From Eutreptiella sp. 'Long Island Sound 2002' (taxonomy: Eukaryota; Protista; Euglenida): a stretch of 64,000 bases of DNA. The notes beneath the pieces were generated by a model. It ran no database searches. It saw only the letters and a list, made by a program, of their open reading frames with translations, and had not been told where the DNA came from. This document shows positions 1 to 22,567 of this stretch, one piece after another. The stretch's first letter is position 1. Each line of letters opens with the position of its first letter. The position numbers and the translations under genes were made by a program. The stretch covers positions 23,560,001 to 23,624,000 of the forward strand of contig OZ038379.1 of the NCBI GenBank assembly GCA_964036045.1, read 5' to 3'.

Positions 1-152
1 TCACCCATCGTAAACCCCTCAGGACCGCCAAGGCGACGGACCCCAAGGAGCTTTTGATGGTGCTCGCACCAAGCGTGGGCAGCAGCAAGGGCCATTATCA
101 AAGAAGATGAAGGCTTTGAGAGCTAAAGCGAAAAGGGGAAACATAAAATGAA

Positions 153-294
153 GCGCGATAACCCACACGATAACTAGGTTATCGCGCGATAACCCCCGCG
201 ATAACCCCCGCGATAACTAGGTTATCGCGCGATAACCCACGCGATAACTAGTGCTCTAACCCCGTTCTAACCCCGCGATAACTAGTTAGAGCAC
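153..294. repeat. CGCGATAAC / GTTAGAGC palindromic array (subterminal array of the upstream A copy)
   Basis: Directly visible repeated CGCGATAAC(CCC/TAG) units, including the hairpin CGCGATAAC-TAG-GTTATCGCG. Confidence 0.9.
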
Positions 295-434
295 ACAAAG
301 ATCAAATCGCAAAAAGTGCAAAACGGGCAATATCGAGCAAACGAAACATGGAAGGCACATTGTTGCATCATAGTGCACCCATGTAACATGTGAAATTCCG
401 GGTTCCAACCATATTAACAACACCCAAAATTGGG

Positions 435-470
435 GGGGTTCCGCACCACGCCCTAGAACGCTGCATCCCA
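435..470. repeat. 36-bp right TIR of the upstream A copy
   Basis: GGGGTTCCGCACCACGCCCTAGAACGCTGCATCCCA, identical to 9296-9331 and the reverse complement of 2617-2652. Confidence 0.92.
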
Positions 471-2568: not shown

Positions 2569-2616
2569 CTGAAACTTTAGAAAAACAGGCGTTTTTGCCC
2601 TGCTTATTAGGACATG

Positions 2617-2652
2617 TGGGATGCAGCGTTCTAGGGCGTGGTGCGGAACCCC
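2617..2652. repeat. Left TIR of element A
   Basis: TGGGATGCAGCGTTCTAGGGCGTGGTGCGGAACCCC, the exact reverse complement of 9296-9331. Confidence 0.92.
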
Positions 2653-2808
2653 TAGTTAGAACGCAATTTTCGGAACACCCACCTACCCTTAATTTTGGGG
2701 CAAACCACCTAAAAAAATGGATTCAGCACCCTCAAAAACCCCCCATCCCCTTTCTTTCCCCACATAACCCTCATTGTAGGGGTGGTTTTTGGGGGGGGGG
2801 GTCAAAGA

Positions 2809-2929
2809 GTTAGAGCACAGTTAGAACAGAGTTAGAACGCAGTTAGAGCACCCTGCTCTAACTAGTTATCGCGCTAGTTATCGCGCGATAACTCAGTTAT
2901 CGCGCAGTTATCGCGGGTAGTTATCGCGC
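2809..2929. repeat. Left subterminal GTTATCGCG / GTTAGAGC array
   Basis: Same motif as the other arrays but predominantly in the opposite orientation; about 160 bp inside the left TIR. Confidence 0.88.
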
Positions 2930-2998
2930 ACCCCTCCTCCATCCCTCACTAGGACAAACAACAGAAAACACTTGGCACAAAGCATGTATGGTCTTTTT

Positions 2999-4657
2999 TC
3001 ATACAAAGTCATCAATGTCTGAGGCCTTGGCTGCCTCCAGCCCCAAAAGCCCTTGCTCCAGGGCGTTCATGGACATGCAATGGTGCATGTGGCGGAGGGA
3101 CATACTTGGCCTCACCAAGGACCAACCCTTAAAACAATTTTTGAGCCTCCTCTTGTAAGGCCCATGCCGATACTCCGTTGGGATGGAGGAAAACTGAAAA
3201 ATGTTCCTCCATTTCTCGGCAAAAAAGGTGGAATGTGCCAAGCACCAATGGATCCACCTGGTGGGGGACCAACCTGAGTCTCCCCACGCTTTTGAAAATT
3301 TTGTGGTCAACGCACGGTGGCGTTCCACTTGGGTTAGAGTGTACAACTCCCTCACCCTCCAAAGCTCATACAAACCCTCAATGCATTTCACCATGACATG
3401 CACAACAACCCATAACATAGGTCCCCCAGGGGTCCTCACTGTGGGGACATGCTCTTTGAGGCATTCCACAAATTGCCTTTGGAAGGGGGGGGAGGTTAGG
3501 AAAACTTTGGTGCTGGTTAGATCGAAATCTTTTTCTGTGGCCCTCGAGGCCGAAGGGAGGCGTTCCCTAAGAGGGATGCCTGCGGTCTCATCCTTGAGGG
3601 CTTGTTTGAAGGCCTGCAAAGCTGCAAGAGCTTGGGCCTTACCAGGGGTACCAGGGGGGAGGGCCTGAAGGGTGGTCTCAATGCGCTTTGCAATGCCGTT
3701 TAGGATGCGGCATGCTGCATGTTGGTAGTCCCCCGGCCGCCTATCAGGGGTCACACTTCTCAAGAATGACCCCCATCTTGAGGTGGACGCCACCCCCCTT
3801 TGCTCAACAATCCCATTGGGGTCTTTGCACAACCAACACTTAGACCCAGCCCCCCCCATTGCTTGCATCCCCTTCCCATCCCCTGTCAAAATGACAGTGC
3901 AAGTCAAAAATTGGTTTTGAAAGAGGACAACGTCCTCTTCCACATCCCTCACCTCTTGGTTGAGGTTGGCGGAGATGTCCAGGCTTCTCAAAAAAGCCTG
4001 TTCATCCCCGCCATCCATGCAAAACCATGAGGCCCATAGCTTCACCTTCGAAGCATATTTTGCCCCCCCCCATACATTAACCCATACATCCGCACGGGTA
4101 GAGGATGCCTTCCACAAGGAAGTCGCATCAACTGAAATAACAATAATGGCAACGCCACTAGGGGGGGGTTTCCCAATAACTCGGGCCATAGATATTGCAT
4201 TTTGCACAATTGATTGCAAAGGCACATGGGCAGCTGCCCTATTGCGGCCTGTGGTAGACTTTACAATGGTGGTTTGGGGAAAGTAGGGCATGATCCGTTG
4301 CCGAACAGTCCTTAGGTCCCGTTGTGTGCAACGGCGGGGCATTCGCAAGAGGGCCCGTTGGGAGAGATGCATGCTGCATGCCATGCGTAGCATGCTCAGG
4401 GCCTCATGCTCCTGAGCTGTTAATGCAAGATGGCCGCCAAGTGGGCCAGACAGGGCAGTGCACGCCCCACCACTTAAACAAACTTCGCCTTTGGTGTTGG
4501 TGCCACACACGACGTCTGGGTCACCCAATAGAACTCGCACCAGCCGCTGAACCGCCTTCAAACGCCGCCGCCGGGCCTTGGGGCACTGCAGATCGGTGTA
4601 CCGCCGCAGGTTGGCTGTGTTGAGAGCCCGCAGGGCCTCATTGACAGCATTGTCCAT
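2999..4657 (-). CDS. RAG1/Transib-like DDE transposase of element A (552 aa from the ATG at 4657)
   Basis: IIVISVDA (D), ILTGDGK (D), CWLC, DYQH, IHWCLAH (H-x4-H, like RAG1 FHKTLAH) and SSIPTE with E 20 residues after the second H, the RAG1 H942-E962 spacing. The ORF is uninterrupted and has a pyrimidine-rich CAG acceptor at 4673 upstream of the ATG. Confidence 0.82.
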   Translation of the reverse strand: MDNAVNEALRALNTANLRRYTDLQCPKARRRRLKAVQRLVRVLLGDPDVVCGTNTKGEVCLSGGACTALSGPLGGHLALTAQEHEALSMLRMACSMHLSQRALLRMPRRCTQRDLRTVRQRIMPYFPQTTIVKSTTGRNRAAAHVPLQSIVQNAISMARVIGKPPPSGVAIIVISVDATSLWKASSTRADVWVNVWGGAKYASKVKLWASWFCMDGGDEQAFLRSLDISANLNQEVRDVEEDVVLFQNQFLTCTVILTGDGKGMQAMGGAGSKCWLCKDPNGIVEQRGVASTSRWGSFLRSVTPDRRPGDYQHAACRILNGIAKRIETTLQALPPGTPGKAQALAALQAFKQALKDETAGIPLRERLPSASRATEKDFDLTSTKVFLTSPPFQRQFVECLKEHVPTVRTPGGPMLWVVVHVMVKCIEGLYELWRVRELYTLTQVERHRALTTKFSKAWGDSGWSPTRWIHWCLAHSTFFAEKWRNIFQFSSIPTEYRHGPYKRRLKNCFKGWSLVRPSMSLRHMHHCMSMNALEQGLLGLEAAKASDIDDFV

Positions 4658-4721
4658 GAAGAATAAGAGGACCTGGGCGCAAAATGAGGGAGGGTTTTGA
4701 AGCAAGGGCCCAAAAAACACA

Positions 4722-4883
4722 CGCGATAACCCACGCGATAACCCCCGCGATAACTAGGTTATCGCGCGATAACCCCCGCGATAACCCCCCGCGATAACTA
4801 GTTAGAGCGCGATAACCCCCCGCGATAACTAGTTAGAGCACCCAGTTATCGCGCGATAACCCCCGCGATAACTAGTTAGAGCA
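4722..4883. repeat. Internal CGCGATAAC array, inside a candidate intron (4901-4673) upstream of the transposase
   Basis: Repeats are visible; on the minus strand they are bracketed by CAG|GTAGTG (4901) and a T-rich tract ending ...CCCAG| (4673). Confidence 0.8.
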
Positions 4884-5115
4884 GGGGTTAGTGCGCACTA
4901 CCTGGTGGTGTTAGAGCAAGCGTTGGGCACCCTAAAACCTTCACAAACGTTGATTTTGCACCCAAGAAACCTTGGAGATGTCAACAATGTGCAGGCACGG
5001 GGTACATGGCGCCACAATCACAAATTCAAATCAGTCAAATGGACATGTTCCGGGCTAGTTGCCCCTCCTCAGAGTCCACAGAGTACAGTAATAGAAATAG
5101 TGAACAATAATCGAA

Positions 5116-5760
5116 TCACAAATAACACTGGCTGGAGGGGTTAGAGGAAGCATTGGGCACCCTAAAACCCATGGACAGCAGCTGCTGCCGCCACACAGGC
5201 GTGCAGTGCAGAACCCCCCCCGCACTATAAAAAATCACGCTCCATCGCTCGCCCTCCCATGGCAATGGAGCGTGTAGTGCCCTGGTGTTGAACAACACCG
5301 GGGCTTGGGGGGTGGCGGTGCATGCCCAACCCTCCACCGCCCTACCCTTGCACACACGGGTGTGCCGCTTTTTTTCCCTCAAGGAGGGATTCAGCAGGCC
5401 ACCACTCTCCACCCAAAACTCACCCCCCGTGAAAGACCCCACACACACAATAAGCGCCATGGGCGCCCCATCCCGCAAATGGGAGTGGAGGCCCATGGTG
5501 TCCGTCCCTTGGGGGCGAACAATTTGGATGCTACACCATGTGAACCATGGTGGAGCATTGGAGGTGCAATACCCATTGAGGTCGGCTACCAAGGGGGTGA
5601 GGGCAGGCCTGAGGGTAGCAGCGGCCATGTGGGTCGCCCTAAAATTAGAGGGGTTGGGGTTTCCACTTCCCACGAGGCCAAAGTGGCACATGTCCACTTG
5701 GGCCCCATATCGCTCCTCCCCACGAAAAATGCCCTTGGGCAACCCCTTGAGCAAATCCAC
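5116..5760 (-). CDS. TET/JBP-like 2OG-Fe(II) dioxygenase domain, in frame behind the TGA at 5764-5766
   Basis: FTWCSIQIV...GLHSH...LIVCVGSFTGGEFWVE...VLFNTRALHAPLPWEGERWSVIFYS fits the TET/JBP double-stranded beta-helix pattern (distal H, then R-x-S-hh-F-Y as in TET RISLVFY). The usual HxD appears as HSH. The ORF begins at GTG rather than ATG. Confidence 0.65.
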   Translation of the reverse strand: MDLLKGLPKGIFRGEERYGAQVDMCHFGLVGSGNPNPSNFRATHMAAATLRPALTPLVADLNGYCTSNAPPWFTWCSIQIVRPQGTDTMGLHSHLRDGAPMALIVCVGSFTGGEFWVESGGLLNPSLREKKRHTRVCKGRAVEGWACTATPQAPVLFNTRALHAPLPWEGERWSVIFYSAGGVLHCTPVWRQQLLSMGFRVPNASSNPSSQCYL

Positions 5761-5763
5761 TAG

Positions 5764-6979
5764 TCATTGGCTCCCACTCCTACTCCCGCTACCCTGACTC
5801 TGCAACCCTTGCGGCGCCAGCCCCTGCTGGGCCTGCTGCGCCCCGAAGGAGGCACAGAGGGTGGAGGTGAGGCTGCGCACCTGCGCCTCAGCCACCCCCA
5901 AGCGCTGCTGGAGGTCATCCCCCCTCCTCCGCTGCCCCTCCACCTCCACCCTAAGCTGGGCCACCTCCACCTCCGCCTTCCGCCTCCCCTCCTGGGCCTC
6001 CCTCAGGGCCTCCCTCATCGCCTCCACCTCCTCCCCCCTCTTGGCGGCCAGGTTGAGGGCCTGGTCCAGGGCACGCTGGGTGTTGCCCTGGGCCTTTTCG
6101 GCCTTTGCCAAGGCCGACTTGTGGTCGGCCGACCGACCCTTGGCCAGTGCGGCCTCGACTCCCGTGGCGGCCGCCTGCTCCACCAAAACCTGGCAAGCGT
6201 CCGTCACGTGGGTGGCCACACTGGCCCCCAAGGCCTCCACGTCCAGGGCCTCATGGGGGGGCTGGGCTGCCGCCACCTTTGCCACCTTCGATGGCTTGGG
6301 GTCCCCAGGGAGGGCTTGGGGGCGGGGGTTTGGCCCTTACCCCTAAGGGGGGGGGGGGCATCCGGCTCAACCACCACCACGTCTGGTCCCCGCTTCGTCT
6401 GGCCTTTTCCTGGCCTTCCCCCCTTGGGTGCATACTGCCGAACCCAATCGGCAGTGGCGTCCACCACAGAAGGGGGGGGGTCATACCCACCAACCTGGTG
6501 GATGCCCCCCCCCCTGTGCAGCTTCAGCCACACTTCCCTCCCCGTAAACTCCCCCTCCCACAAAAAACACACCCTCAAAAGGAAATAAGATTTCCTTTGG
6601 GGGGGGTCGCTCATCCCAAACAAACACAAAAAAGCCGCAACCGTTTCCCCCTCTGCGGCTTGCGGCCACTTGGCCGTTTCCCCCCCAACCCACACATAGG
6701 AGGGGAGGGTGAGGTTGGTCTTCCTCTCCACCCCCCCTCCTTCTCGGTGATGGTGACCTGCCGGTACCATCCCGTCCCCCCCATCCTGCAGGCCTCATCC
6801 CCAGGCTCCCCAAACCGCCATGACGCCCCCTCCGGCAGCCTCTTCTCCCCCTCCAGCTCCAACCGGGCCGCCACCGGCTTGGCGGGCCGTGCCCCCGCTG
6901 CTGCTGCCGCTCCGCCTGCTGCGTCGGCTGCCTGGGCGTCGTCCTTGACGAAGATGCGGGGCAGCTGCAAGATGGTAGC
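5764..6979 (-). CDS. Exon 2 of the element A cargo gene (Ala/Gly-rich linker, unknown globular segment, coiled coil); two frameshifts in homopolymer runs
   Basis: The long poly-T acceptor ...TTTTTTTCAG|GCT ACC ATC at 6980 opens the 119-aa frame. Frame switches at the C7 run (~6731-6737) and the G12 run (~6347-6358) link the 119-, 188- and 173-aa ORFs. The 173-aa part is heptad/coiled-coil-like. Confidence 0.6.
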
Positions 6980-7012
6980 CTGAAAAAAACAAAAGAAACA
7001 AAAAAAAAAAAC

Positions 7013-7199
7013 ACGCGATAACCCGCGCGATAACCCCCGCGATAACTAGGTTATCGCGCGATAACCCCCGCGATAACCCCCCGCGATAACCCCGCGATAA
7101 CTAGTTAGAGCGCGATAACCTAGCGCGATAACTAGTTAGAGCACCTAGTTAGAACGCGATAACCTAGCGCGATAACTAGTTAGAGCAAGGGTTAGAGCA
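7013..7199. repeat. Internal CGCGATAAC array within the phase-0 intron 7223-6980
   Basis: The array lies between the donor CAG|GTGTGA (7223) and the acceptor at 6980. Confidence 0.85.
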
Positions 7200-7223
7200 G
7201 GGTGTTGTGGGAAGTTTTCACAC

Positions 7224-8944
7224 CTGGTGACATGGACACATGCCTTGGCCCTCCTTCTTGGCGTCGTCCAGCACCAGGCCCAGCCTCCGCAGCCACACGA
7301 AGTCCGTGACGGCCGCATACCATCTTTGTGGGCGGTGCACAAAATGAGCCGATTGCATCCGTAGCAATTGGCTACCACCTTCCCCCTACACCTAACCGCC
7401 CCATCACACTGGACTGTCCTGGCCACCCGGCCACCAGGTGCCCCCAGCTGGGGCCTGTTAATGGACTGGGTCACGTGCAGGTTGGGGAATCGAAGATTCC
7501 CCCCCACGGTAAGCTCAATGGCAAAAAATGCCATGAGGCGGGGGTGGGACACCCCTGTGGGGGAGGCCTTGGGAATCCCCGACCCCCGGTGTACATCAAG
7601 GGCATTAAAAAAAAAGGCAGTGCCCCTCTTGAATGGCACAGCCCTCTCCACCCAAGGGTCAGGGAACCCCGAACTGCTGGAGGGCACAAAAAGAAAATGT
7701 GACCCATCCTCCTCCTCATGATTATGGGTTAGCATAATAAGGCAATTGACAATCAATGTGCCTTCAGGAATGGTGTAGGGGGGGGCGTCGCGATGGAGGT
7801 GCTGGGGGGTGTGGTCATAGCTCGAAATTTCGGCCATGTCAAGGATGGTGCAGCTCCATCCAACCCCCCCCACCACAGTCTTCTTCGCCGTCTCAAGCAC
7901 ACGATCTGCCACCCTTTTGAGGACTGGCAGATCATGGAGCTTGTGGGGGTTGTGCCTGTGGTGGTTGGCACCCCCATAGTTGCCATACAATGTACGGCGG
8001 GTCCCAGAATCTTGGGGCCTGCCGACAATGGGGGGGTTCTCATTGAAAATGGGTGCCTTCTCTGAGAGAGGCACCCTATCCAAATCATCCAAAAGACTTT
8101 GGAGCTGCACATCACTCAAAAAATCGTGCTCCAGGAGGTGGTTGACCACCAGCTTCCCCCCCACCGTGAGCACAAGGTCATTGGGGTCCCTATTAAAGGC
8201 CCCCAAGGGCTCGGCGGCAACCACCTCCTCCGCCTCCCCAATAAGGGGGGGTGTTGCCCCAAATGGAAAAAGAATCACCCCCTGCCCCGAAATAATGTTG
8301 GGTGTGGTGACCCCATACCACTCACGCTCCCACTCCCTTGTGGGGCAAAGGGAGTGCATGGGGAGCTTGTTTTCGGGGTCGTCAGTGCAGACCCGGCGGG
8401 TGTTGTGGGTGAGGGGTTTAAATTGGGGGAACCAACCATCCGACTGCCCCTTCCCCTTACCCGGTCGGATCCTTACCTTCTGGACACTAATCATGAGGGG
8501 GTTGTGGGGCTTCTCCTTCCTCCCCCCAGCCCCCACCCCCCCCGCATCCTCCTCCTCCTCCTCCACTTCCTCCACTTCCTCCTCCTCCTGACCCACATAG
8601 AGGGTCGTCTTCGTCCCCGCACCCTTCTCGGCATGGGCGGTGACGGACTCCACCACCGCGTCCACATCGTCCGGATGAAGCTGGATCAAAAATCCAGCAA
8701 CCCCTGGATTTACCTCTAGCAACTCGAAGATGTAGTTGCTGAGAACCAGGGGGTCCTTGTCGTCCGCCATGAAGGGGGACTTATGGACAAGGAGTCCAAA
8801 GTCCACACCATGTTCAAAGCGGGTCGCCACAGGGCGCCTCACATTGGCATCACCCATCGTAAACCCCTCAGGACCGCCAAGGCGACGGACCCCAAGGAGC
8901 TTTTGATGGTGCTCGCACCAAGCGTGGGCAGCAGCAAGGGCCAT
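7224..8944 (-). CDS. Exon 1 of the element A cargo gene: PhyH-like 2OG-Fe(II) dioxygenase plus Cys/His finger; 1-nt frameshift near 7320
   Basis: QHLHRD (HxD), FFFNALDVHRGSG (distal H) and PRLMAFF (R). C-terminal C-x5-C-x7-C-x2-C-x5-C-x2-H, continuing after one extra G as YAAVTDFVWLRRLGLVLDDAKKEGQGMCPCHQ up to the GT donor. The ATG at 8944 follows a pyrimidine tract and TAG acceptor at 8972. Confidence 0.72.
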
Positions 8945-9001
8945 TATCAAAGAATATGAAAGCTTTGAGAGCTAAAGCGAAAAGGGGAAACATAAAATGA
9001 A

Positions 9002-9153
9002 GCGCGATAACCCACGCGATAACCCACGCGATAACTAGGTTATCGCGCGATAACCCCCGCGATAACCCCCGCGATAACTAGGTTATCGCGCGATAACCCA
9101 CGCGATAACTAGTGCTCTAACCCCGTTCTAACCCCGCGATAACTAGTTAGAGC
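9002..9153. repeat. Right subterminal CGCGATAAC array of element A
   Basis: Visible repeats about 145 bp inside the right TIR, directly upstream (minus strand) of the acceptor for the cargo gene. Confidence 0.88.
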
Positions 9154-9295
9154 ACACAAAGATCAAATCGCAAAAAGTGCAAAACGGGCAATATCGAGCA
9201 AACGAAACATGGAAGACACATTGTTGCATCATAGTGCACCCATGTAACATGTGAAATTCCGGGTTCCAACCATATTAACAACACCCAAAATTGGG

Positions 9296-9331
9296 GGGGT
9301 TCCGCACCACGCCCTAGAACGCTGCATCCCA
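9296..9331. repeat. Right TIR of element A
   Basis: Exact reverse complement of 2617-2652. Confidence 0.92.
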
Positions 9332-9423
9332 TGGGGTTACAAACCCAAGACCCCGAGCCATAGCGCGCGCTATGCTGCGCGCTATAGTTTTGTAGTGCGC
9401 ACTGAGCCATCGCGCGGCAATAC

Positions 9424-9675
9424 CCTGTAGCGCGCACGCAGGGAGCGGGTCATTTTCGCCTCAAAATGGACCACCACATTGCACCACGGCTCGTGAGATG
9501 CTTCATTGGGTACCCATTTGCAATCATTTGATACCCCATCACCATGGAAGAAGAAGCACCCTAACTGCTTTTTCATGGTATTCCCAACACCAAGAAAGAG
9601 TGGGAACATGCACACATGGCAGAAGATAATGACAACATGAATCGTACGCCACGGGTGTTGACATGACCAATGCAT
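9424..9675 (-). CDS. Upstream exon of the element B transposase gene
   Basis: The 97-aa frame has a phase-0 donor AGG|GTATTG at 9423, resembling the donor at 2284. It joins in frame to the acceptor TTTCAG|ATG at 2569 if element A is treated as intronic. AGCGCGCGC repeats at 9361-9440 match those at 661-730 and 2181-2280. Confidence 0.55.
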
Positions 9676-9925
9676 GCTCTTTTTGTTTTGGGGTTAGCTT
9701 TTCTAGCCTGCCTTTGATCCTCGGAGCTATTGGCCCGTAGCGAGGAAATTGTTCCCACAATTTTGCATCTTTTGAATTCCTTTGCTTGACGTGTCGTGAT
9801 GACCAATTTAAAACCTGCAAATTCAAAGCAGAGTATTTTGCATGATGATGCAAAGCATGTGGGTGTTGTGATGATCTTGCAAAGCATGTCGGTGTTGTGC
9901 CACAAACTTTGTTGAACACAAGTCC

Positions 9926-10978
9926 AAGCACAACCTGCCCGGAACGAAAAGTGAAAGCAGCCCAAAACCATGAACGCAAGCTTCATTGATTAAAAGGGGA
10001 ACCTAATTCATTACCTTAATGGACAGCCCACATCGCCAAGTATCTGTCGTTAGCATTTGTGATGACAATGTGCATGTGGTGAGCAAAAATATTTTGCAAG
10101 ACGTGTGGGCCTTAACTGCTTCAAAGTCTGTACTTGCACACATGTGAGCCATTATTGATGGAACCTGATGACATGTGGCCTCAGCTTGGGTTTTGTGTGT
10201 TGGAGGGCAGGATTGTTCCTTGTTCAACCTGCAACTGGCCCTAAGGTCATCGAATTTTCTTTGGTTGTCTTCAGCTGGTGTCGACATAACAACACACCCT
10301 TTATAACACCATTGTGCACATGCAGGTGCATCAAGGCTGGAGGGCACATGCGCTAGGAACGCACTTCTTGGAAAGTTGGCATCTTAACTTTTGCCCCTCC
10401 GTGGCGATAAATCTAAATACATGAATGTGACCGTCATGGTAATGAAATGTCATTCATAAAGAAAATCCTTGGCATCTGTGGCACATTTCGAGTTTTTCAT
10501 TAATTCCACCAAACACCAGGAAAAATCTCCCCAGAATCTGGTTCAAAAGGCGGAGCACAATAAAAATCGATTAAAACTGTGGACCCAGCCAGTACCATGG
10601 GGTTAAATAGCGCCATTTGGCCCATTTCCAGGTTCCCCACCACCGGAAATCCTCCGACGGCCACAACCAAAAGCGGTGCGGGCCTGTAGCACCTCTACTT
10701 GGGCGGTCATGGCGCCAGTGAAAGACATGAAACGACCACTTCCAATAATGACGGCTCACATGTGTGCAAACAAAGACTTTGAAGCCGTTAAGGCCCACAC
10801 ATCTTGCAAAATATTTTTGCTCACCGCATGCAAATCGTCATCACAAATGCTAACAACAGATATTTGGCGATGTGAACTGTCCATTTAGGCAATGAATTGG
10901 CTTCCCCTTTTAACCAATGAAGTTTGCGTTGGTGGTGTTGCGCTCCTTTCACTTTTCGTTCGGGGCATCGTTGTGCTT
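9926..10978. mobile_element. Fold-back/MITE-like unit with ~230-bp imperfect inverted arms (9926-10156 / 10744-10978); copy at +9130
   Basis: The arms align on opposite strands (e.g. translations AHMCASTDFEAVKAHTSCKIFLLT vs AHMCANKDFEAVKAHTSCKIFLLT). No convincing internal ORF. Confidence 0.65.
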
Positions 10979-13437
10979 TGATTTGGGTTAGGTCGAACGT
11001 ATTTAGAAGTTAAGGAACCTTTTTAAGGAAACTAGGCTAGTTTTGATCCTGAAATCTTTAGAAATTCAAGGAGACTAGCGAACCCGCTGAAAGTCATGTG
11101 GGCGACGGATTTGCCGGATGGGCAATTTTTTGGACTTTTGTTTGGCCGATTCCTCCGCATTCTTTGCGAGTTACAGGCTGAGACTCTGTAGAATATCAAT
11201 TGAACATGAAAACCAACTATTGATCGTTCAGGTTTGCAGTCAAGATCGATTTTGGATTTGACAATCGATGAAAAAAATTCGCACCTGAAAAGAAACTGCG
11301 TATATAGACCGTTAGAATTTATTATAAATAACGATTTTACAGAGCTTCGGCTTCCGAATCCCGAAGAATCTGGAGAAATCCGTGAAACAAAAGTCCAACG
11401 CGGCCACGCCGGCGACAGCGCCGCTAAGGAATTCGGCAGGCTGTTGATCAAAAGCCGAAGGATTTGACATGCGGGGTCTACTAGCCTGGGTGTTGTGTCA
11501 TTGTTATGGGTCATTTTGCACCGCTTATGCACAATAATGCGCCTTACGCGTAGAATCATTTCGCGATTGCCCCATGGACACCCGCGCTTACAAGTATTGT
11601 CCAAGCACAATTGGAATCACCCAAAGGTCCTTTCCAACCCTTGCCGAACAGCACGCTTCATCGTTGGGCCAAAACATGCCGTCTTTTGCCGCTTCCAAAG
11701 GTACGTTGACACATGGATGTGCCAGTGGGAATGGTGTGGTTGGCATGTTGGATTTAGGTACAAAGCTTTGCGAATTCGAATGATTCGAGTCGTGTCACTT
11801 TGGTGAGCTTTGTGTTTGCCTCGCTTTACCGTGCAATCGTATCATCAATTTCTTTGTCGTGTGTGACGAGCATTCGCACTCACGGAATTGCCACTCGAGT
11901 GGTGATGGACACGTGTTAAGCCCACAATGTATAAATTACGCACGCTTTTTGAATGAACGTGGTAATGACTAAGCCACTTTAGGTTGAAATCACAATCGCG
12001 GTCACCATGACGCGCGCTCGAAGAATGATGAAGTTGACCCGACATACGGGTTTCGTTGCATTTGTTCTTTGCTTACACTAACCACAAAAGTTTGTGAAGA
12101 TGAGGTTTAGTTATTTTCCTTTGCGGTTGTGAAACGGAAATCCAATTTATCCATGTGTCGGATCGTCTTTTGGAAGTGATTTTTGTAGAAATGTATTATT
12201 GATCATATTGCGTATTTCACAAAGTCCCATTCACGGACACCACTTTCTTCAAAATCTACTTGCCTGCCATCGACCGGCTACATTCCAACTTATTGTCAAT
12301 GCTTGTGGCCCTTTGACTTACGCCAAAACTTTCAACGGTTGTGGCAACAGTCTTTCAGGCAATAGAGGGTCGTGCTAGATCAACACGCGAGGCACAAGTG
12401 CTTTGCGAAAAAGAGGATGCTACACGTTGCAATCCCTGGGTGTGCTACCTTGCAAATAAATTTTTCCGTCGTCCAATATCGGTCCACCACGATTCACGAC
12501 TCGAAGAACCGTTATTGACCCTATTCTGCATCCAATTCGTATTCACCATAATCTTCTACACCTCCCACAATTGCGACAACGCGTTTGACACATTGCATTT
12601 GGCCGACTCAATTCCCGAGAGTTTTCATCGCGAGAATTGATGGGACGTTGGGTAGAGGTATTAAATTTCGCAAATCGCGATGAAATGTGTTGAAATTCGA
12701 ATCCATGCGAGGCCAAGGTGCTTCGGCGTCTTCTTCACCAACGGGCACGACAACAAATACATCATCGACGTGCTTCGGCGATTAGAATTCCATCCAGTCT
12801 TTGGTTGTCTTGCCAAATAAGTCGCAATCTTAGAAGCATTGTGGAAGGATCACCAAACCTAGGCATAACGCGCGACGGTACGATGAGCGGTGCATTGGTC
12901 GACGAATTGTAGACGACGGGTATGCTCCACAAATTTCATGCTTTGTGGAGATGGTGTGGTGTAGTCTCCCACCATTGATGTTTTCGTATGCCGGAGTGCC
13001 TTCGTGAATTCGGTGTTTGACCTTACCGCACAAAGACGACAAGAGGACCATTTCCATTCTTTCCATGCGGAGCAAAGCACTCATCTGGAGAAACTCGTAG
13101 TTTTTGAGGCAATTTCCACTCCAAGGAGCACTATCTTCGACGCAAGCATCAAAGTCGACCTACCTAAAGTAAAAGCGAAAAGGGGCGCCGCACAAGGCCT
13201 CGACAATCGTAGCGTTTCACCATCGCATAAACTTCACAAAAAAGCTGAAATGCATGTGAGAGTCACTACACACGAAATTGGTGAGACAACGACCGGTGCC
13301 GCACACCCAACCCTTGCCATTTTGTTTTCGAGCGGTCTCCACAACCGACACTAAACCACTCATCGTGCCGTATTCCGTGAATTGTTGGTCGACATGGAGC
13401 CCAAAGATGGTGCACACCTCCCGTTGTGCAGTGATGT

Positions 13438-14745
13438 TTGGAATTCTTTTTTGCGTTGCTATGTGACCCTATCCCGACTTGTAGAGCTTTTGTTTTTCTT
13501 TCTTCCATGCTTGCATCGGGGCCATTGTGGCTCACTTGCGTCCAACTCTTCCTTCACATTTGGGCCTATTTTGTCATACGACGCTACCCTCCATTGCTAT
13601 TGCAAGAACAGAAACCAAAGTCCGAGTTGGGCGACGTTGCAAAGCTTCACTCGGCACATATTTATTCCCCTTGGACGGCTACCATTTTGATACTCATCCC
13701 CAATACCTTGCTTTGCCTAGCAACCCTCGTTGGTTGTGTCGACACGGGGCAAACAGTATTTTGGCATTGGGCCCTCTCCGGATTGATCTTCATTACGTGG
13801 CCACTAAAGTGGGCCACCCTCATTTGGCATTGGCCCCAGCATATCTATGTGGGATCGGCTCATGCCAACATGGGTTCGCCAAAGGATGCATTGGAATTCT
13901 CTCCTCGGATGTACGTGTGGCACATTTGGGGTCATCCGTCGTACTCTCAAGACATTGAGGATGCTCGGCCGAAGGCTGCACGCTACTTGCTCCATTCTGT
14001 GTTACCCAGATTGCTCACATCAAGCCTTGTGATAGTGTACTTGAACTCGTTTGATGGCCGGTTGGTGAACTTGATTGAAGAGCGTTGGGTAGTGGTGTAC
14101 CGCTCGGCATGGGGACAAATCAGCGTGAACCCCTTCCTGCACTGGGCGTGTCTATGCTATGCGGTTGTGTTCTTCTTAACTTGTGGTGCTTTTGCTGACC
14201 TACTCAACTGCCAAACAACTCTGATGACTGGGCTGCCTTCAAGCACCCACCACAACGACGACAACCTGCCCTTACTCTTTGGCGGGTTGGGCCCTTTGTT
14301 GGCCACAAGTCCCAGGGACCTTTGGGGTCGCCGGTGGAACCGTGAGGTCTACAAGCCATTCCGCCAGCTACTCTTTCCCCGGTGCATCCGGTGGCTGCCC
14401 AATGCACTGCCTTTTCACATGAAAGCAGCGGTCGCGTCGCTGTTCGTGTTCACAATCTCGGGGGCACTGCACGAAGTGTTTATATGGAATGTGCTAAAGT
14501 GCCCCCACCAAGATGAGCCCAGCACACGGCTGCTCGAGGCGACGCCTACAGGCGAAACGTTTGCCTTCTTCGTGCTGCATGGAACCGCATGTGTCGTCCA
14601 AACTCTGGTGCAAAGGTGGTGGCCTCGCCTTGGCGCTGGGATGGGATCTGTGGCGCTTGACCGTGGGTGCGTCTACTTGTTTTTATGGTGCTGTCAGAAT
14701 CAGTGCTCTCAAGCCCAGTGCTGTGGGAATTGGCATGCACATTAA
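13438..14745 (+). CDS. MBOAT-family (MBOAT_2, wax-synthase-like) membrane O-acyltransferase
   Basis: Multiple hydrophobic helices; SPRDLWGRRWN, FVFTISGALHE (catalytic H) and FAFFVLHG are typical of plant-type wax synthase MBOATs. The exact start and C-terminus are uncertain. Confidence 0.8.
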   Translation: MEFFFALLCDPIPTCRAFVFLSSMLASGPLWLTCVQLFLHIWAYFVIRRYPPLLLQEQKPKSELGDVAKLHSAHIYSPWTATILILIPNTLLCLATLVGCVDTGQTVFWHWALSGLIFITWPLKWATLIWHWPQHIYVGSAHANMGSPKDALEFSPRMYVWHIWGHPSYSQDIEDARPKAARYLLHSVLPRLLTSSLVIVYLNSFDGRLVNLIEERWVVVYRSAWGQISVNPFLHWACLCYAVVFFLTCGAFADLLNCQTTLMTGLPSSTHHNDDNLPLLFGGLGPLLATSPRDLWGRRWNREVYKPFRQLLFPRCIRWLPNALPFHMKAAVASLFVFTISGALHEVFIWNVLKCPHQDEPSTRLLEATPTGETFAFFVLHGTACVVQTLVQRWWPRLGAGMGSVALDRGCVYLFLWCCQNQCSQAQCCGNWHAH

Positions 14746-14779
14746 TGATGCCACCACCGGAGCCGCATTCTCATATTTG

Positions 14780-15180
14780 CATCACACCACATTGCATCGC
14801 ATGGCATCGCATCGCATCACATCACATCACATCACATCACATCGCCATATGCTGACAACAGCATCAACAAATTGCAAACTTGGTGCATTGCCATTTGGTA
14901 CTGTGTCAACCGGTGGTGTGAGCAGTGGTCAGTGGGTAGTGGTGTTGCGGACATTGGAGCTCTCATTTGGTGCTGTCAGCATTTAGTGGTGTGATGTGTT
15001 GCAATGTAAGGATTAGTGCTGTAGGAACCACTGTGGAGAATGCTGTGAAAAGCATTGGTGTGATGATTATTGCCAAATGCTCTGATTGGTGATGTGATTG
15101 GATGTGATGTAACGCGATGCGATGCGATGCGATGTGATGTGGTGTGACATGATATGATGTGATGCAACGTGATGTGAAGA
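14780..15180. repeat. Inverted pair of (CATCA/CATCG)n and (GATGT/GATGC)n microsatellite tracts
   Basis: Tracts at ~14780-14848 and ~15090-15180 are reverse-complementary in motif; duplicated at +9130. Confidence 0.7.
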
Positions 15181-16212
15181 TTGGTTTCGTAAGTGCTGCG
15201 ACAGTGAGTTCTTTGGCGTACCCTGGAAGGTGTAAGAACACGTTCCAAAGAGAAAACAGGTGTGGAGCGGTGCATTCAAGATTGGTGCGGTGAAAGTGTG
15301 ATGCCCCAGAATGACAGGTATTCTTCAGCTCTATTTACACTCATTTCATAAACGCTCGTCTGCATGGTTTATTACAGAACCCATTTGCCCTGGTTACATT
15401 TTAGCCTGAATGCCCAATGTCTTTCTTGGTGTCTCAGGACTGCCTATACTTCCACGCCCTCAGCTCTCTGTGCGGGAGCTGGATAACCTGGATATTGCAC
15501 AAAAAGTTGCATTTCTGCAGAATCTTATTTTGTACATACAAAAGCCCAATAAATAATGATATCTGAATTTGTTAATTTCTTGTTTCGTTCGTTTAGCTTA
15601 ACAAGTTGCAATGACTTTTTGGGCAGTAGCCCAATCATTTTCTACCTTCCAATTTATGTCGGTGGTTCCTTCCATAATTGCCCAGCTGCCTCATCATTGT
15701 CCGGGGCAGTACTGGGAGATGCACCTCGAATCGCACAGATCCAACGCACTTTCTTTTGTGCGTGAACGTGGGGCTACGAGTGTAGCAATGCTTACTCGTT
15801 GCTGTCTGTTTGGCTGCGCAACATTGAGCAGACTGCAGATGTCATTGTAGCATTGCTAGGCATGCAAGCAGGCATGCTGCATAGATTGCCTGGGGTTTGT
15901 GCGTGGGGGCAGGCCAGGGTGGTGCTAGGGGGGTTCAGATCTTGCATATTCCTTTGGCTACTAGCACAACGGTCTTGTCCGGTCTGGATTTTTGTGCAAA
16001 TTGTGACTTTTGTGTGAAAAGTTGGGTCAGGGGTATTTGCATGTGGCGGATCTTGTGGTTTTGGTGTTTTTTGATGATTCGACGAAGGATTAGAGTTTTG
16101 CATGTAGACCAGTTTGGCAGATCACAAGACCGGTCTAGACCGGTCTTTGTACCAACTCAAACGAACTCAAACGAAAAAGGGATACAAGGATTACAAGGTT
16201 TTTACTTCTTCT

Positions 16213-18461
16213 GCGATAACCCCGCGATAACTAGTTAGAGCGCGATAACCTAGCGCGATAACTAGTTAGAGCACCTAGTTAGAACGCGATAACCTAGCGC
16301 GATAACTAGTTAGAGCAAGGGTTAGAGCAGGGTGTTGTGGGAAGTTTTCACACCTGGTGACATGGACACATGCCTTGGCCCTCCTTCTTGGCGTCGTCCA
16401 GCACCAGGCCCAGCCTCCGCAGCCACACGAAGTCCGTGACGGCCGCATACCATCTTTGTGGGCGGTGCACAAAATGAGCCGATTGCATCCGTAGCAATTG
16501 GCTACCACCTTCCCCCTACACCTAACCGCCCCATCACACTGGACTGTCCTGGCCACCCGGCCACCAGGTGCCCCCAGCTGGGGCCTGTTAATGGACTGGG
16601 TCACGTGCAGGTTGGGGAATCGAAGATTCCCCCCCACGGTAAGCTCAATGGCAAAAAATGCCATGAGGCGGGGGTGGGACACCCCTGTGGGGGAGGCCTT
16701 GGGAATCCCCGACCCCCGGTGTACATCAAGGGCATTAAAAAAAAAGGCAGTGCCCCTCTTGAATGGCACAGCCCTCTCCACCCAAGGGTCAGGGAACCCC
16801 GAACTGCTGGAGGGCACAAAAAGAAAATGTGACCCATCCTCCTCCTCATGATTATGGGTTAGCATAATAAGGCAATTGACAATCAATGTGCCTTCAGGAA
16901 TGGTGTAGGGGGGGGCGTCGCGATGGAGGTGCTGGGGGGTGTGGTCATAGCTCGAAATTTCGGCCATGTCAAGGATGGTGCAGCTCCATCCAACCCCCCC
17001 CACCACAGTCTTCTTCGCCGTCTCAAGCACACGATCTGCCACCCTTTTGAGGACTGGCAGATCATGGAGCTTGTGGGGGTTGTGCCTGTGGTGGTTGGCA
17101 CCCCCATAGTTGCCATACAATGTACGGCGGGTCCCAGAATCTTGGGGCCTGCCGACAATGGGGGGGTTCTCATTGAAAATGGGTGCCTTCTCTGAGAGAG
17201 GCACCCTATCCAAATCATCCAAAAGACTTTGGAGCTGCACATCACTCAAAAAATCGTGCTCCAGGAGGTGGTTGACCACCAGCTTCCCCCCCACCGTGAG
17301 CACAAGGTCATTGGGGTCCCTATTAAAGGCCCCCAAGGGCTCGGCGGCAACCACCTCCTCCGCCTCCCCAATAAGGGGGGGTGTTGCCCCAAATGGAAAA
17401 AGAATCACCCCCTGCCCCGAAATAATGTTGGGTGTGGTGACCCCATACCACTCACGCTCCCACTCCCTTGTGGGGCAAAGGGAGTGCATGGGGAGCTTGT
17501 TTTCGGGGTCGTCAGTGCAGACCCGGCGGGTGTTGTGGGTGAGGGGTTTAAATTGGGGGAACCAACCATCCGACTGCCCCTTCCCCTTACCCGGTCGGAT
17601 CCTTACCTTCTGGACACTAATCATGAGGGGGTTGTGGGGCTTCTCCTTCCTCCCCCCAGCCCCCACCCCCCCCGCATCCTCCTCCTCCTCCTCCACTTCC
17701 TCCACTTCCTCCTCCTCCTGACCCACATAGAGGGTCGTCTTCGTCCCCGCACCCTTCTCGGCATGGGCGGTGACGGACTCCACCACCGCGTCCACATCGT
17801 CCGGATGAAGCTGGATCAAAAATCCAGCAACCCCTGGATTTACCTCTAGCAACTCGAAGATGTAGTTGCTGAGAACCAGGGGGTCCTTGTCGTCCGCCAT
17901 GAAGGGGGACTTATGGACAAGGAGTCCAAAGTCCACACCATGTTCAAAGCGGGTCGCCACAGGGCGCCTCACATTGGCATCACCCATCGTAAACCCCTCA
18001 GGACCGCCAAGGCGACGGACCCCAAGGAGCTTTTGATGGTGCTCGCACCAAGCGTGGGCAGCAGCAAGGGCCATTATCAAAGAATATGAAAGCTTTGAGA
18101 GCTAAAGCGAAAAGGGGAAACATAAAATGAAGCGCGATAACCCACGCGATAACCCACGCGATAACTAGGTTATCGCGCGATAACCCCCGCGATAACCCCC
18201 GCGATAACTAGGTTATCGCGCGATAACCCACGCGATAACTAGTGCTCTAACCCCGTTCTAACCCCGCGATAACTAGTTAGAGCACACAAAGATCAAATCG
18301 CAAAAAGTGCAAAACGGGCAATATCGAGCAAACGAAACATGGAAGACACATTGTTGCATCATAGTGCACCCATGTAACATGTGAAATTCCGGGTTCCAAC
18401 CATATTAACAACACCCAAAATTGGGGGGGTTCCGCACCACGCCCTAGAACGCTGCATCCCA
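16213..18461 (-). mobile_element. Left-truncated duplicate of element A (array, cargo exon 1 at 16354-18074, right TIR 18426-18461)
   Basis: Matches 7083-9331; no left TIR or transposase adjacent. Confidence 0.9.
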
Positions 18462-21400
18462 TGGGGTTACAAACCCAAGACCCCGAGCCATAGCGCGCGC
18501 TATGCTGCGCGCTATAGTTTTGTAGTGCGCACTGAGCCATCGCGCGGCAATACCCTGTAGCGCGCACGCAGGGAGCGGGTCATTTTCGCCTCAAAATGGA
18601 CCACCACATTGCACCACGGCTCGTGAGATGCTTCATTGGGTACCCATTTGCAATCATTTGATACCCCATCACCATGGAAGAAGAAGCACCCTAACTGCTT
18701 TTTCATGGTATTCCCAACACCAAGAAAGAGTGGGAACATGCACACATGGCAGAAGATAATGACAACATGAATCGTACGCCACGGGTGTTGACATGACCAA
18801 TGCATGCTCTTTTTGTTTTGGGGTTAGCTTTTCTAGCCTGCCTTTGATCCTCGGAGCTATTGGCCCGTAGCGAGGAAATTGTTCCCACAATTTTGCATCT
18901 TTTGAATTCCTTTGCTTGACGTGTCGTGATGACCAATTTAAAACCTGCAAATTCAAAGCAGAGTATTTTGCATGATGATGCAAAGCATGTGGGTGTTGTG
19001 ATGATCTTGCAAAGCATGTCGGTGTTGTGCCACAAACTTTGTTGAACACAAGTCCAAGCACAACCTGCCCGGAACGAAAAGTGAAAGCAGCCCAAAACCA
19101 TGAACGCAAGCTTCATTGATTAAAAGGGGAACCTAATTCATTACCTTAATGGACAGCCCACATCGCCAAGTATCTGTCGTTAGCATTTGTGATGACAATG
19201 TGCATGTGGTGAGCAAAAATATTTTGCAAGACGTGTGGGCCTTAACTGCTTCAAAGTCTGTACTTGCACACATGTGAGCCATTATTGATGGAACCTGATG
19301 ACATGTGGCCTCAGCTTGGGTTTTGTGTGTTGGAGGGCAGGATTGTTCCTTGTTCAACCTGCAACTGGCCCTAAGGTCATCGAATTTTCTTTGGTTGTCT
19401 TCAGCTGGTGTCGACATAACAACACACCCTTTATAACACCATTGTGCACATGCAGGTGCATCAAGGCTGGAGGGCACATGCGCTAGGAACGCACTTCTTG
19501 GAAAGTTGGCATCTTAACTTTTGCCCCTCCGTGGCGATAAATCTAAATACATGAATGTGACCGTCATGGTAATGAAATGTCATTCATAAAGAAAATCCTT
19601 GGCATCTGTGGCACATTTCGAGTTTTTCATTAATTCCACCAAACACCAGGAAAAATCTCCCCAGAATCTGGTTCAAAAGGCGGAGCACAATAAAAATCGA
19701 TTAAAACTGTGGACCCAGCCAGTACCATGGGGTTAAATAGCGCCATTTGGCCCATTTCCAGGTTCCCCACCACCGGAAATCCTCCGACGGCCACAACCAA
19801 AAGCGGTGCGGGCCTGTAGCACCTCTACTTGGGCGGTCATGGCGCCAGTGAAAGACATGAAACGACCACTTCCAATAATGACGGCTCACATGTGTGCAAA
19901 CAAAGACTTTGAAGCCGTTAAGGCCCACACATCTTGCAAAATATTTTTGCTCACCGCATGCAAATCGTCATCACAAATGCTAACAACAGATATTTGGCGA
20001 TGTGAACTGTCCATTTAGGCAATGAATTGGCTTCCCCTTTTAACCAATGAAGTTTGCGTTGGTGGTGTTGCGCTCCTTTCACTTTTCGTTCGGGGCATCG
20101 TTGTGCTTTGATTTGGGTTAGGTCGAACGTATTTAGAAGTTAAGGAACCTTTTTAAGGAAACTAGGCTAGTTTTGATCCTGAAATCTTTAGAAATTCAAG
20201 GAGACTAGCGAACCCGCTGAAAGTCATGTGGGCGACGGATTTGCCGGATGGGCAATTTTTTGGACTTTTGTTTGGCCGATTCCTCCGCATTCTTTGCGAG
20301 TTACAGGCTGAGACTCTGTAGAATATCAATTGAACATGAAAACCAACTATTGATCGTTCAGGTTTGCAGTCAAGATCGATTTTGGATTTGACAATCGATG
20401 AAAAAAATTCGCACCTGAAAAGAAACTGCGTATATAGACCGTTAGAATTTATTATAAATAACGATTTTACAGAGCTTCGGCTTCCGAATCCCGAAGAATC
20501 TGGAGAAATCCGTGAAACAAAAGTCCAACGCGGCCACGCCGGCGACAGCGCCGCTAAGGAATTCGGCAGGCTGTTGATCAAAAGCCGAAGGATTTGACAT
20601 GCGGGGTCTACTAGCCTGGGTGTTGTGTCATTGTTATGGGTCATTTTGCACCGCTTATGCACAATAATGCGCCTTACGCGTAGAATCATTTCGCGATTGC
20701 CCCATGGACACCCGCGCTTACAAGTATTGTCCAAGCACAATTGGAATCACCCAAAGGTCCTTTCCAACCCTTGCCGAACAGCACGCTTCATCGTTGGGCC
20801 AAAACATGCCGTCTTTTGCCGCTTCCAAAGGTACGTTGACACATGGATGTGCCAGTGGGAATGGTGTGGTTGGCATGTTGGATTTAGGTACAAAGCTTTG
20901 CGAATTCGAATGATTCGAGTCGTGTCACTTTGGTGAGCTTTGTGTTTGCCTCGCTTTACCGTGCAATCGTATCATCAATTTCTTTGTCGTGTGTGACGAG
21001 CATTCGCACTCACGGAATTGCCACTCGAGTGGTGATGGACACGTGTTAAGCCCACAATGTATAAATTACGCACGCTTTTTGAATGAACGTGGTAATGACT
21101 AAGCCACTTTAGGTTGAAATCACAATCGCGGTCACCATGACGCGCGCTCGAAGAATGATGAAGTTGACCCGACATACGGGTTTCGTTGCATTTGTTCTTT
21201 GCTTACACTAACCACAAAAGTTTGTGAAGATGAGGTTTAGTTATTTTCCTTTGCGGTTGTGAAACGGAAATCCAATTTATCCATGTGTCGGATCGTCTTT
21301 TGGAAGTGATTTTTGTAGAAATGTATTATTGATCATATTGCGTATTTCACAAAGTCCCATTCACGGACACCACTTTCTTCAAAATCTACTTGCCTGCCAT

Positions 21401-22567
21401 CGACCGGCTACATTCCAACTTATTGTCAATGCTTGTGGCCCTTTGACTTACGCCAAAACTTTCAACGGTTGTGGCAACAGTCTTTCAGGCAATAGAGGGT
21501 CGTGCTAGATCAACACGCGAGGCACAAGTGCTTTGCGAAAAAGAGGATGCTACACGTTGCAATCCCTGGGTGTGCTACCTTGCAAATAAATTTTTCCGTC
21601 GTCCAATATCGGTCCACCACGATTCACGACTCGAAGAACCGTTATTGACCCTATTCTGCATCCAATTCGTATTCACCATAATCTTCTACACCTCCCACAA
21701 TTGCGACAACGCGTTTGACACATTGCATTTGGCCGACTCAATTCCCGAGAGTTTTCATCGCGAGAATTGATGGGACGTTGGGTAGAGGTATTAAATTTCG
21801 CAAATCGCGATGAAATGTGTTGAAATTCGAATCCATGCGAGGCCAAGGTGCTTCGGCGTCTTCTTCACCAACGGGCACGACAACAAATACATCATCGACG
21901 TGCTTCGGCGATTAGAATTCCATCCAGTCTTTGGTTGTCTTGCCAAATAAGTCGCAATCTTAGAAGCATTGTGGAAGGATCACCAAACCTAGGCATAACG
22001 CGCGACGGTACGATGAGCGGTGCATTGGTCGACGAATTGTAGACGACGGGTATGCTCCACAAATTTCATGCTTTGTGGAGATGGTGTGGTGTAGTCTCCC
22101 ACCATTGATGTTTTCGTATGCCGGAGTGCCTTCGTGAATTCGGTGTTTGACCTTACCGCACAAAGACGACAAGAGGACCATTTCCATTCTTTCCATGCGG
22201 AGCAAAGCACTCATCTGGAGAAACTCGTAGTTTTTGAGGCAATTTCCACTCCAAGGAGCACTATCTTCGACGCAAGCATCAAAGTCGACCTACCTAAAGT
22301 AAAAGCGAAAAGGGGCGCCGCACAAGGCCTCGACAATCGTAGCGTTTCACCATCGCATAAACTTCACAAAAAAGCTGAAATGCATGTGAGAGTCACTACA
22401 CACGAAATTGGTGAGACAACGACCGGTGCCGCACACCCAACCCTTGCCATTTTGTTTTCGAGCGGTCTCCACAACCGACACTAAACCACTCATCGTGCCG
22501 TATTCCGTGAATTGTTGGTCGACATGGAGCCCAAAGATGGTGCACACCTCCCGTTGTGCAGTGATGT

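Follow-up and report, generated by a model that had tools for sequence, protein, structure and literature searches.

The window analysed here, a 64,000-nucleotide stretch of contig OZ038379.1 that lies on contig ctg8407_33x_l in ENA assembly ERZ25074135, holds a 6.7-kb DNA transposon at positions 2617-9331. The element is bounded by terminal inverted repeats (TIRs) that are perfect over 36 bp, a pairing for which the chance expectation is 0 matches, and all the long open reading frames (ORFs) between the TIRs lie on the minus strand (Table 1). Read along the gene strand, these are a PhyH-like dioxygenase with a Cys-rich finger (ORF D), a coiled-coil segment, a Cys/His-rich domain (ORF B) and a transposase (ORF A), with arrays of a 9-mer repeat between and around them. 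We consider it probable that the locus is a high-copy, recently active transposon with a RAG1/Transib-type transposase fold, in which the PhyH-like dioxygenase is a long-standing element gene. An earlier annotation of the same DNA (the original prediction) had reported the perfect TIRs, an intact transposase with a D/D/CxxC/Hx4H/E residue set, a Cys/His finger and a coiled coil upstream on the same strand, a second copy at the start of the window and recent activity of a mobile TIR element; all of these held on re-examination, with the finger located in ORF D.

Table 1. Features of the transposon and its partial copies in the window (positions refer to the window; a dot denotes no strand).
Feature	Position	Strand	Remarks
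Second, truncated copy, 5' end (TIR, array, start of ORF D)	1-470	-	97% identical; remainder read in L004
Left target-site duplication	2615-2616	.	TG on + strand, CA on gene strand; matches 9332-9333
Left TIR, 36 bp	2617-2652	+	3' end of element relative to genes; 100% complementary to 9296-9331
Left subterminal array	2806-2929	.	Inverted orientation; GTTAGAGC/GTTAGAAC motifs, then six copies of GTTATCGCG
Left-end CGCGATAAC array	2851-2929		Inverted orientation; adjoins left TIR
Transposase, ORF A	3002-4657	-	552 amino acids (aa) from first ATG, intact; stop 2999-3001; DDE enzyme
Internal CGCGATAAC array	4712-4894	.	Just upstream of transposase gene
ORF B	5119-5760	-	214 aa; Cys/His-rich C-terminal domain of the putative accessory protein; stop 5116-5118
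In-frame TGA between coiled coil and ORF B	5764-5766	-	Arg (CGA) in more divergent copies
Coiled-coil segment	5767-6285	-	Weak coiled-coil-type matches only (ATG16, SMC, DndD)
Exon 2, N-terminal part, of the accessory gene	6286-6979	-	Aligned with L010, L009 and L001, where the frame is continuous
Putative intron, 244 nt	6980-7223	-	Holds the whole array 7004-7198; donor CAG/GTGTGA; acceptor poly-T and CAG/GCT; phase 0
Internal CGCGATAAC array	7004-7198		Between ORF D and next coding block
ORF D	7145-8950	-	PhyH-like ORF with Cys-rich finger
ORF D, coding part	7224-8944	-	N-terminal domain, predicted PhyH-like 2-oxoglutarate (2OG)-Fe(II) dioxygenase, Cys-rich zinc finger
5' subterminal CGCGATAAC array	8993-9165	.	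Upstream of ORF D; adjoins right TIR
Right TIR, 36 bp	9296-9331	-	Perfect pair with 2617-2652
Right target-site duplication	9332-9333	.	TG on + strand
Duplicate of 7083-9331	16213-18461	-	Inside 9.13-kb perfect tandem duplication

The element termini read 5'-TGGGATGCAG (TGGGATG...CATCCCA), and those of a related element, L008, read TGGGGTGTCG. Further copies were taken from other contigs of ERZ25074135, where five more TIR-bounded copies carry the same genes. The TIR-bounded copies L001 (7342 bp), L005 (6433 bp, with the start of a second copy also present), L009 (6659 bp) and L010 (5002 bp) keep the gene order of the window. The five copies compared were 93-99% identical to the window copy within aligned blocks, and the internal deletions of the window copy and of these four differ from one copy to the next. 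The most divergent ORF B copy, L006, is an old fragment without transposase or arrays and is therefore uninformative on architecture. At 90% identity, the largest ORF B cluster comprised 235 sequences and the largest ORF D clusters 491 and 220, so that the copy number of the family runs to hundreds.

On the gene strand, the target-site duplications (TSDs) were CA/CA for the window copy and for L005, AG/AG for L009, TA/TA for L010 and GA/GA for the related L008 element. L001 was an apparent exception; comparison with a paralogous empty site (L001:18470-18560) identifies GG as its duplicated dinucleotide. Five elements and the L001 empty site thus establish that the element makes 2-bp TSDs, and the same five copies and empty site ruled out 5 bp or any other length. 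The stretch 2617-9331 is one copy of a genuine, recently active, high-copy cut-and-paste transposon. At L001:5801-5802 two extra bases (AC) lie between the GG TSD and the left TIR, and they may be a trace of imprecise end processing. The L010 copy (L010:9528-14529), we also observed, is a derivative whose deletion has joined the coiled coil in frame with transposase residues 312-552, giving a chimeric ORF of 619 aa within intact TIRs flanked by the TA TSD.

The 9-mer CGCGATAAC was found at 66 sites in the window against 0.13 expected, grouped into four arrays (Table 1). Comparable arrays accompany the related transposases: six transposase lineages each have a 7-12-mer motif of their own arrayed on both sides of the transposase gene, namely CGCGATAAC in the window lineage, CAGGAAC in L002, GCAGTAAC in L003, TTGTTGCA in L007 (within 682-bp TIRs), CGCGATAA and GTGCACTAAGG in L008, and TTCGCTGGAAC in L012. 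The simplest explanation would be that either the transposase or the accessory protein binds the lineage-specific arrays. The L008 motif TTGTCGCG and the L007 motif TTGTTGCA differ by CpG transitions, which hints that the binding sites may drift by deamination, with the transposase following.

The candidate catalytic and zinc-binding residues of the transposase are D177, D260, C274xxC277, H470x4H475 and E495. ORF A had no match in Pfam, NCBIfam, PHROG or the PDB sequences (phmmer included). An exhaustive HMMER search with ORF A recovered 538 related cluster representatives, the full-length ones sharing 30-38% identity with it. Every one of these relatives derives from a metagenome, a Logan assembly or an unannotated ENA assembly; those few with a name are labelled only "hypothetical protein", and one occurs as an identical sequence in many aquatic metagenomes. 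An alignment of 33 sequences revealed the conserved blocks DATPLW..SATRCDV, W..DG.DD, TGDGKGM, CW.C and R.GAFL..IP..RR.GD..H, followed by WVHW...HS and, 20 residues on, by FSSIPTE.RN..FK. A profile built from this alignment matched no RAG1 or Transib chain among the PDB sequences, and the 33 homologues matched no transposase family of any kind in Pfam at E ≤ 1, RAG1 included.

The same 33-sequence alignment served as input for an AlphaFold model of ORF A, which had a predicted local distance difference test (pLDDT) score of 89.5 and a predicted template-modelling (pTM) score of 0.82. In the model, strand 1 carries D177, D260 comes after strand 4, and E495 sits on a helix. In the Foldseek comparison of the model with the PDB, ranks 1-49 were all RAG1, amphioxus BbRAGL or HzTransib, with E values from 1.1e-11 to 5.9e-6 and template-modelling (TM) scores of up to 0.57. 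The match extends over ~580-660 aligned columns and so takes in nearly the entire RAG1 core. The next match was the hAT transposase Hermes, with E 2.8e-3 and TM 0.24, and the viral structure library BFVD gave no meaningful match. H475 and E495 are 20 residues apart, which we take to be also the spacing of H942 and E962 in RAG1. The predicted structure supports a RAG1/Transib-type fold for ORF A. The original prediction had called the enzyme RAG1/Transib-like, and that description stands as far as the fold is concerned. Its motif argument does not, since the C(2)C / H(3-4)H set is not specific to RAG1 and is the signature of the whole CACTA-Mirage-Chapaev-Transib (CMCT) clade (PMC12730594).

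The fold is set against a different picture in the element as a whole. With Transib and RAG1 (HzTransib, BbRAGL and the RAG1 core), ORF A shares the predicted fold over all 552 residues, an RNase H fold that bears the DDE triad, a CxxC pair beyond the second Asp, an Hx4H motif 20 residues ahead of the Glu and an E-x-R-N-x-x-F-K type motif after it. Unlike Transib and RAG, which make 5-bp TSDs, the element makes 2-bp TSDs; its termini are TGGGATG rather than the CAC heptamer, 9-mer arrays stand where those elements have a single heptamer-spacer-nonamer, the accessory gene encodes a dioxygenase, there is no RAG2-like partner, and ORF A has no detectable sequence or profile similarity to these enzymes. 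In its 2-bp TSD, its non-CAC termini and its 9-mer arrays, the element is not Transib-like.

It is a real possibility, which we rate at somewhat under even odds, that the element is better classed with the CACTA/En-Spm, Mirage and Chapaev (CMC) transposons, as one of CACTA/Mirage type, than as a relative of Transib/RAG1. The companion proposal, that the RAG1 match merely reflects which members of the clade turned up among solved structures, is about as plausible. The C(2)C and H(3-4)H motifs of ORF A, common to the whole CMCT clade, would be expected under such a classification, and so would a short TSD, as CMC transposons make 2-4 bp and Mirage, like some CACTA elements, 2 bp. Subterminal arrays of a short motif in both orientations and a second large protein besides the transposase recall En/Spm, and the location of all genes on one strand, with splice-like signals flanking the arrays, fits as well; alternative splicing may be a further parallel. 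Against this classification, the TGGGATG termini are neither CACTA nor CAC...GTG, and the accessory protein appears to combine a 2OG dioxygenase, a zinc finger and a coiled coil, which sets it apart from TNPA. Moreover, none of the 33 ORF A homologues matches a Pfam transposase family, CACTA and Plavaka counting among these if their models are in the library. The structural match also reaches beyond the RNase H fold to nearly the whole RAG1 core. We conclude that the transposase represents an undescribed lineage within the CMCT clade.

The window copy of ORF D matched Pfam PhyH (PF05721) with E 0.013 and 16.2 bits, below the curated cut-off of 22 bits, and gave a weak match to 2OG-FeII_Oxy_3. 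Its homologue in L003, a sequence from a different metagenome that is related to ORF D with a tblastn E value of 1.4e-23, scored 27.9 bits against PhyH (E 3.4e-6), above that cut-off. A profile of the ORF D family found the PhyH-type oxygenase 4nao in the PDB (E 0.039), with the HRD and HRGS motifs aligned. The triad H386-R-D388...H454 (ORF D numbering) is invariant between the window family and L003, which share 27% identity. The 2OG-binding Arg was aligned by eye only (HPRLM versus IRGML), and its column is not invariant. The window and L003 lineages both have a Cys-rich finger behind the catalytic domain. At the level of sequence, ORF D is confirmed as a PhyH-type 2OG-Fe(II) dioxygenase; the original prediction of such an enzyme upstream of the transposase on the same strand is borne out by the Pfam match of L003, by 4nao and by the invariant triad.

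The dioxygenase gene recurs beside distant transposases. In L003, the PhyH-like gene adjoins a transposase 36.7% identical to ORF A. In L008, a third lineage with its own TIRs and its own 2-bp TSD, a D-like gene is fused by deletion to a truncated transposase. Both PhyH-like genes thus stand beside transposases that are 35-37% identical to ORF A, have themselves diverged to ~25-30% identity, and keep the same N-terminal domain and zinc finger. The PhyH-like gene is therefore an old, recurrent partner of the transposase and no one-off passenger.

This bears on a further alternative, in which the element captured its dioxygenase and coiled-coil genes from a host and they ride along as a passenger, playing no part in its life cycle. 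DNA transposons do capture host fragments. The L010 derivative has kept intact ends while losing parts of the cargo, the subfamily with the TGA before ORF B was amplified to hundreds of copies, and in some related lineages the transposase has no gene of this kind in its vicinity. We nevertheless hold a mere passenger to be improbable, in view of the homologous genes in L003 and L008, the invariant catalytic triad, and a ratio of non-synonymous to synonymous substitution (dN/dS) for ORFs D and B that is similar to that of the transposase. Relative to other copies, each of the four ORFs had a dN/dS within the range 0.2-0.56.

In P0257, the canonical 680-aa form of ORF D, the coding sequence stops at CAG/GTGTGA, after which come the array, a long poly-T and CAG/GCT, with the phase kept. 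Across the region between ORF D and ORF B, L010 has one continuous ORF. ORF C (5764-6285, minus strand) shares its frame with ORF B, with a single TGA between them, and P0018 and P0014 read through the TGA position with R. Compared with other copies, the window copy carries four lesions: a 409-bp deletion near 7320 that shifts the frame relative to the canonical ORF D, a -1 change near 6738, where a run of G has lost one base, an insertion of 8 bp at 6302-6309, and the CGA-to-TGA stop at 5764-5766. The accessory gene of the window copy is therefore defective, and the transposase is intact. Only the junction 7223/6979 plausibly marks a real intron. Of the spliced gene that had been proposed earlier, this one junction is plausible, and the other joins are lesions relative to other copies. 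A single accessory protein, composed of the dioxygenase, zinc finger, linker, coiled coil and ORF B, is plausible. The arrays upstream of ORF D and of ORF A are likewise flanked by donor-like and acceptor-like sequences, those around the array 4712-4894 being CAG/GTAGTG and CCCAG/G. These signals suggest that the element may use alternative splicing from one promoter, in a manner like En/Spm.

ORF B had been predicted to be a TET/JBP-type domain, which would make the element a carrier of two different dioxygenases that oxidise 5-methylcytosine (5mC) or thymine to mark or demethylate its own DNA. We regard this as very improbable. ORF B is a real coding sequence, given its dN/dS of 0.39, 0.31 and 0.20 against other copies, values indicative of purifying selection. 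By eye, its segment LH(S/A)HLRDGAP with the hydrophobic strand that follows recalls double-stranded β-helix (DSBH) enzymes, and its LHAPLPWEGERWSVIFY recalls the H...RxS end of such enzymes, so that a diverged oxygenase fold is conceivable. TET/JBP genes are also known to ride on transposons of the CMCT clade in fungi (PMC12730594). The observed/expected ratio of CpG was 0.62-0.66, and that of GpC ~1.0, both window-wide and in the element copies, and C-to-T changes among copies were twice as frequent at CpG sites. This moderate depletion, the excess of CpG C-to-T changes and the CGA-to-TGA change at 5764-5766 would all fit a host with some cytosine methylation. Set against these points are the searches, in which the 20 ORF B members matched no Pfam family at E ≤ 10, Tet_JBP (PF12851) and the 2OG families included. 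A profile of ORF B found nothing relevant among PDB sequences, where a single-sequence search was also without a match, and there was no match in NCBIfam or PHROG. Single and profile searches of 5.8 billion proteins recovered no homologue outside the element family, and hhalign detected no similarity between ORF B and the DSBH domain of the element itself in ORF D. The supposed iron motif reads H-S-H-L-R-D, that is H-x-x-D instead of HxD, and its Asp is replaced by Asn in the divergent lineage P0041; the distal His163 is conserved. An AlphaFold model of ORF B from a cleaned, shallow alignment of 20 sequences, all of them family members, was unusable (pLDDT 33.5). The conserved Cys and His residues would fit a zinc-binding domain equally well. 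The TET/JBP assignment of 5116-5760 is thus unsupported, as profile searches fail to place ORF B there, and with it the second dioxygenase is left without support. The mobile DNA-modification system of the original prediction would then come down to the PhyH-like enzyme.

A tandem duplication complicates the element's right-hand part. Window 7083-16212 is repeated exactly, head to tail, at 16213-25342, with 100% identity over an alignment of 9133 bp. The junction has a 3-bp GCG microhomology, one breakpoint falls within the internal CGCGATAAC array, and the duplicated segment covers ORF D, the right TIR and a neighbouring gene with an MBOAT_2 domain (13438-14745 / 22568-23875). The duplication is either a very recent event or a mis-assembly. 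A TIR at 18426-18461 was considered as a third independent insertion and rejected, because it sits inside the exact duplication. In the GAG-rich (poly-Glu) tract of ORF D at ~8540-8600, one base differs between the window and the public ENA record (L004); ORF D is whole in the window and appears as two gene calls in that record. The idea that assembly errors, and not mobility, gave rise to the repeat structure could draw on the perfect duplication starting inside the element and on this one-base difference. It deserves next to no credence against independent copies on six contigs that differ in their flanks, internal deletions and TSDs, and against the existence of a paralogous empty site.

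We must also note what weighs against reading the locus as a RAG1/Transib-fold transposon with a long-standing dioxygenase gene. The relationship of ORF A to RAG1 and Transib is undetected by any sequence profile, whether Pfam RAG1 or PDB sequences. No CACTA/CMC transposase structure was among the PDB matches of ORF A, and Foldseek therefore cannot place it nearer to Transib/RAG1 than to other members of the CMCT clade. None of the compared copies has every gene intact. In L007, L012 and others, the transposase has no adjacent dioxygenase gene in the DNA examined, so that the dioxygenase is not required by every member of the group. Finally, PhyH-type enzymes usually act on small molecules.

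If the locus is indeed a RAG1/Transib-fold transposon with its own dioxygenase, its life cycle might be pictured as follows. The transposase would bind the TIRs and the 9-mer arrays, cut by a hairpin mechanism of the RAG/Transib/hAT type, and integrate with a 2-bp stagger. One 5' promoter would drive expression of the three coding blocks, which, as in En/Spm, would be alternatively spliced around introns that contain the arrays. The dioxygenase protein could then act on chromatin or DNA at the element and so aid transposition or counter host silencing; such an action of the PhyH-like protein is speculation, by analogy with the fungal TET/JBP transposons.

Transposons carrying TET/JBP genes in fungi were reportedly described by Iyer et al. 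in 2014. Fungal transposons of several superfamilies, including the RAG1-like ESTA, carry TET/JBP dioxygenases (Kojima 2025, PMC12730594). The architecture at 2617-9331 had been presented earlier as unlike any described element, which is overstated, as RAG1-like (ESTA) and other CMCT transposons of fungi carry TET/JBP genes; a search of the literature turned up no earlier account of transposons that carry PhyH or of RAG1-like ones from algae. Like the fungal elements (KDZ, Plavaka, ESTA and TET+ EnSpm), the present one is a DNA transposon of high copy number that stably carries a 2OG-Fe(II) dioxygenase gene, and some of them (ESTA) share a RAG1-like CMCT transposase. Unlike in those elements, the confirmed dioxygenase is PhyH-like and not TET/JBP, it shares the plausible full-length protein with a zinc finger, a coiled coil and an orphan domain, the TSD is any dinucleotide and not TA, and the host is not demonstrably a fungus.

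RAG1-fold transposases matter for their kinship with the V(D)J recombinase. A lineage of them in unicellular eukaryotes that is large and unannotated, with a different end architecture and a 2-bp TSD, would widen the known range of the RAG1 fold and could help to root the CACTA-Transib-RAG1 clade. That a dioxygenase is kept with the transposase through deep divergence suggests a strategy that recurs and is no peculiarity of fungi, and in the PhyH-like protein there is a candidate, open to testing, for a new modification of DNA or chromatin. The family-specific arrays offer a natural system for the co-evolution of transposases and their binding sites. A more ambitious version, unlikely in our view, would have an undescribed RAG1-fold lineage at the level of a superfamily, widespread in aquatic microbial eukaryotes, that has co-evolved with a DNA- or chromatin-modifying protein of PhyH-type dioxygenase and zinc finger, and in which the 9-mer arrays define the specificity of the transposase. 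If true, it would be a second, independent case of a transposon-borne oxidative epigenetic enzyme, alongside the fungal TET/JBP transposons. If the dioxygenase acts only on a small molecule or is dispensable, the element is an ordinary new transposon family.

Several features of the surroundings were also recorded. The clearest sign of a eukaryotic host is a U2 small nuclear RNA gene at window 63188-63358 (62.5 bits, above the Rfam cut-off); a search for the dinoflagellate spliced-leader sequence gave 0 matches. Related copies are adjoined by the pol gene of a long terminal repeat (LTR) retrotransposon (RVT_1, RNase H and rve; L008:1357-5055) and by a hAT dimerisation domain (L011:3279-4010); the host genomes are rich in transposons. 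Just outside the element in the window, an inverted-repeat pair at 9915-10163 / 10740-10989 has arms of 228-250 nt that are 87-88% complementary and 576 nt apart, and it may represent a foldback element or one resembling a miniature inverted-repeat transposable element (MITE). The same pair occurs at 19045-19293 / 19870-20119. Farther along, a DEAD/ResIII helicase gene at 41189-44614 is split, its N-terminal domains falling in ORF 41189-42040 and its Helicase_C domain in ORF 43355-44614. This is a normal gene of the host, interrupted by one or more long introns.

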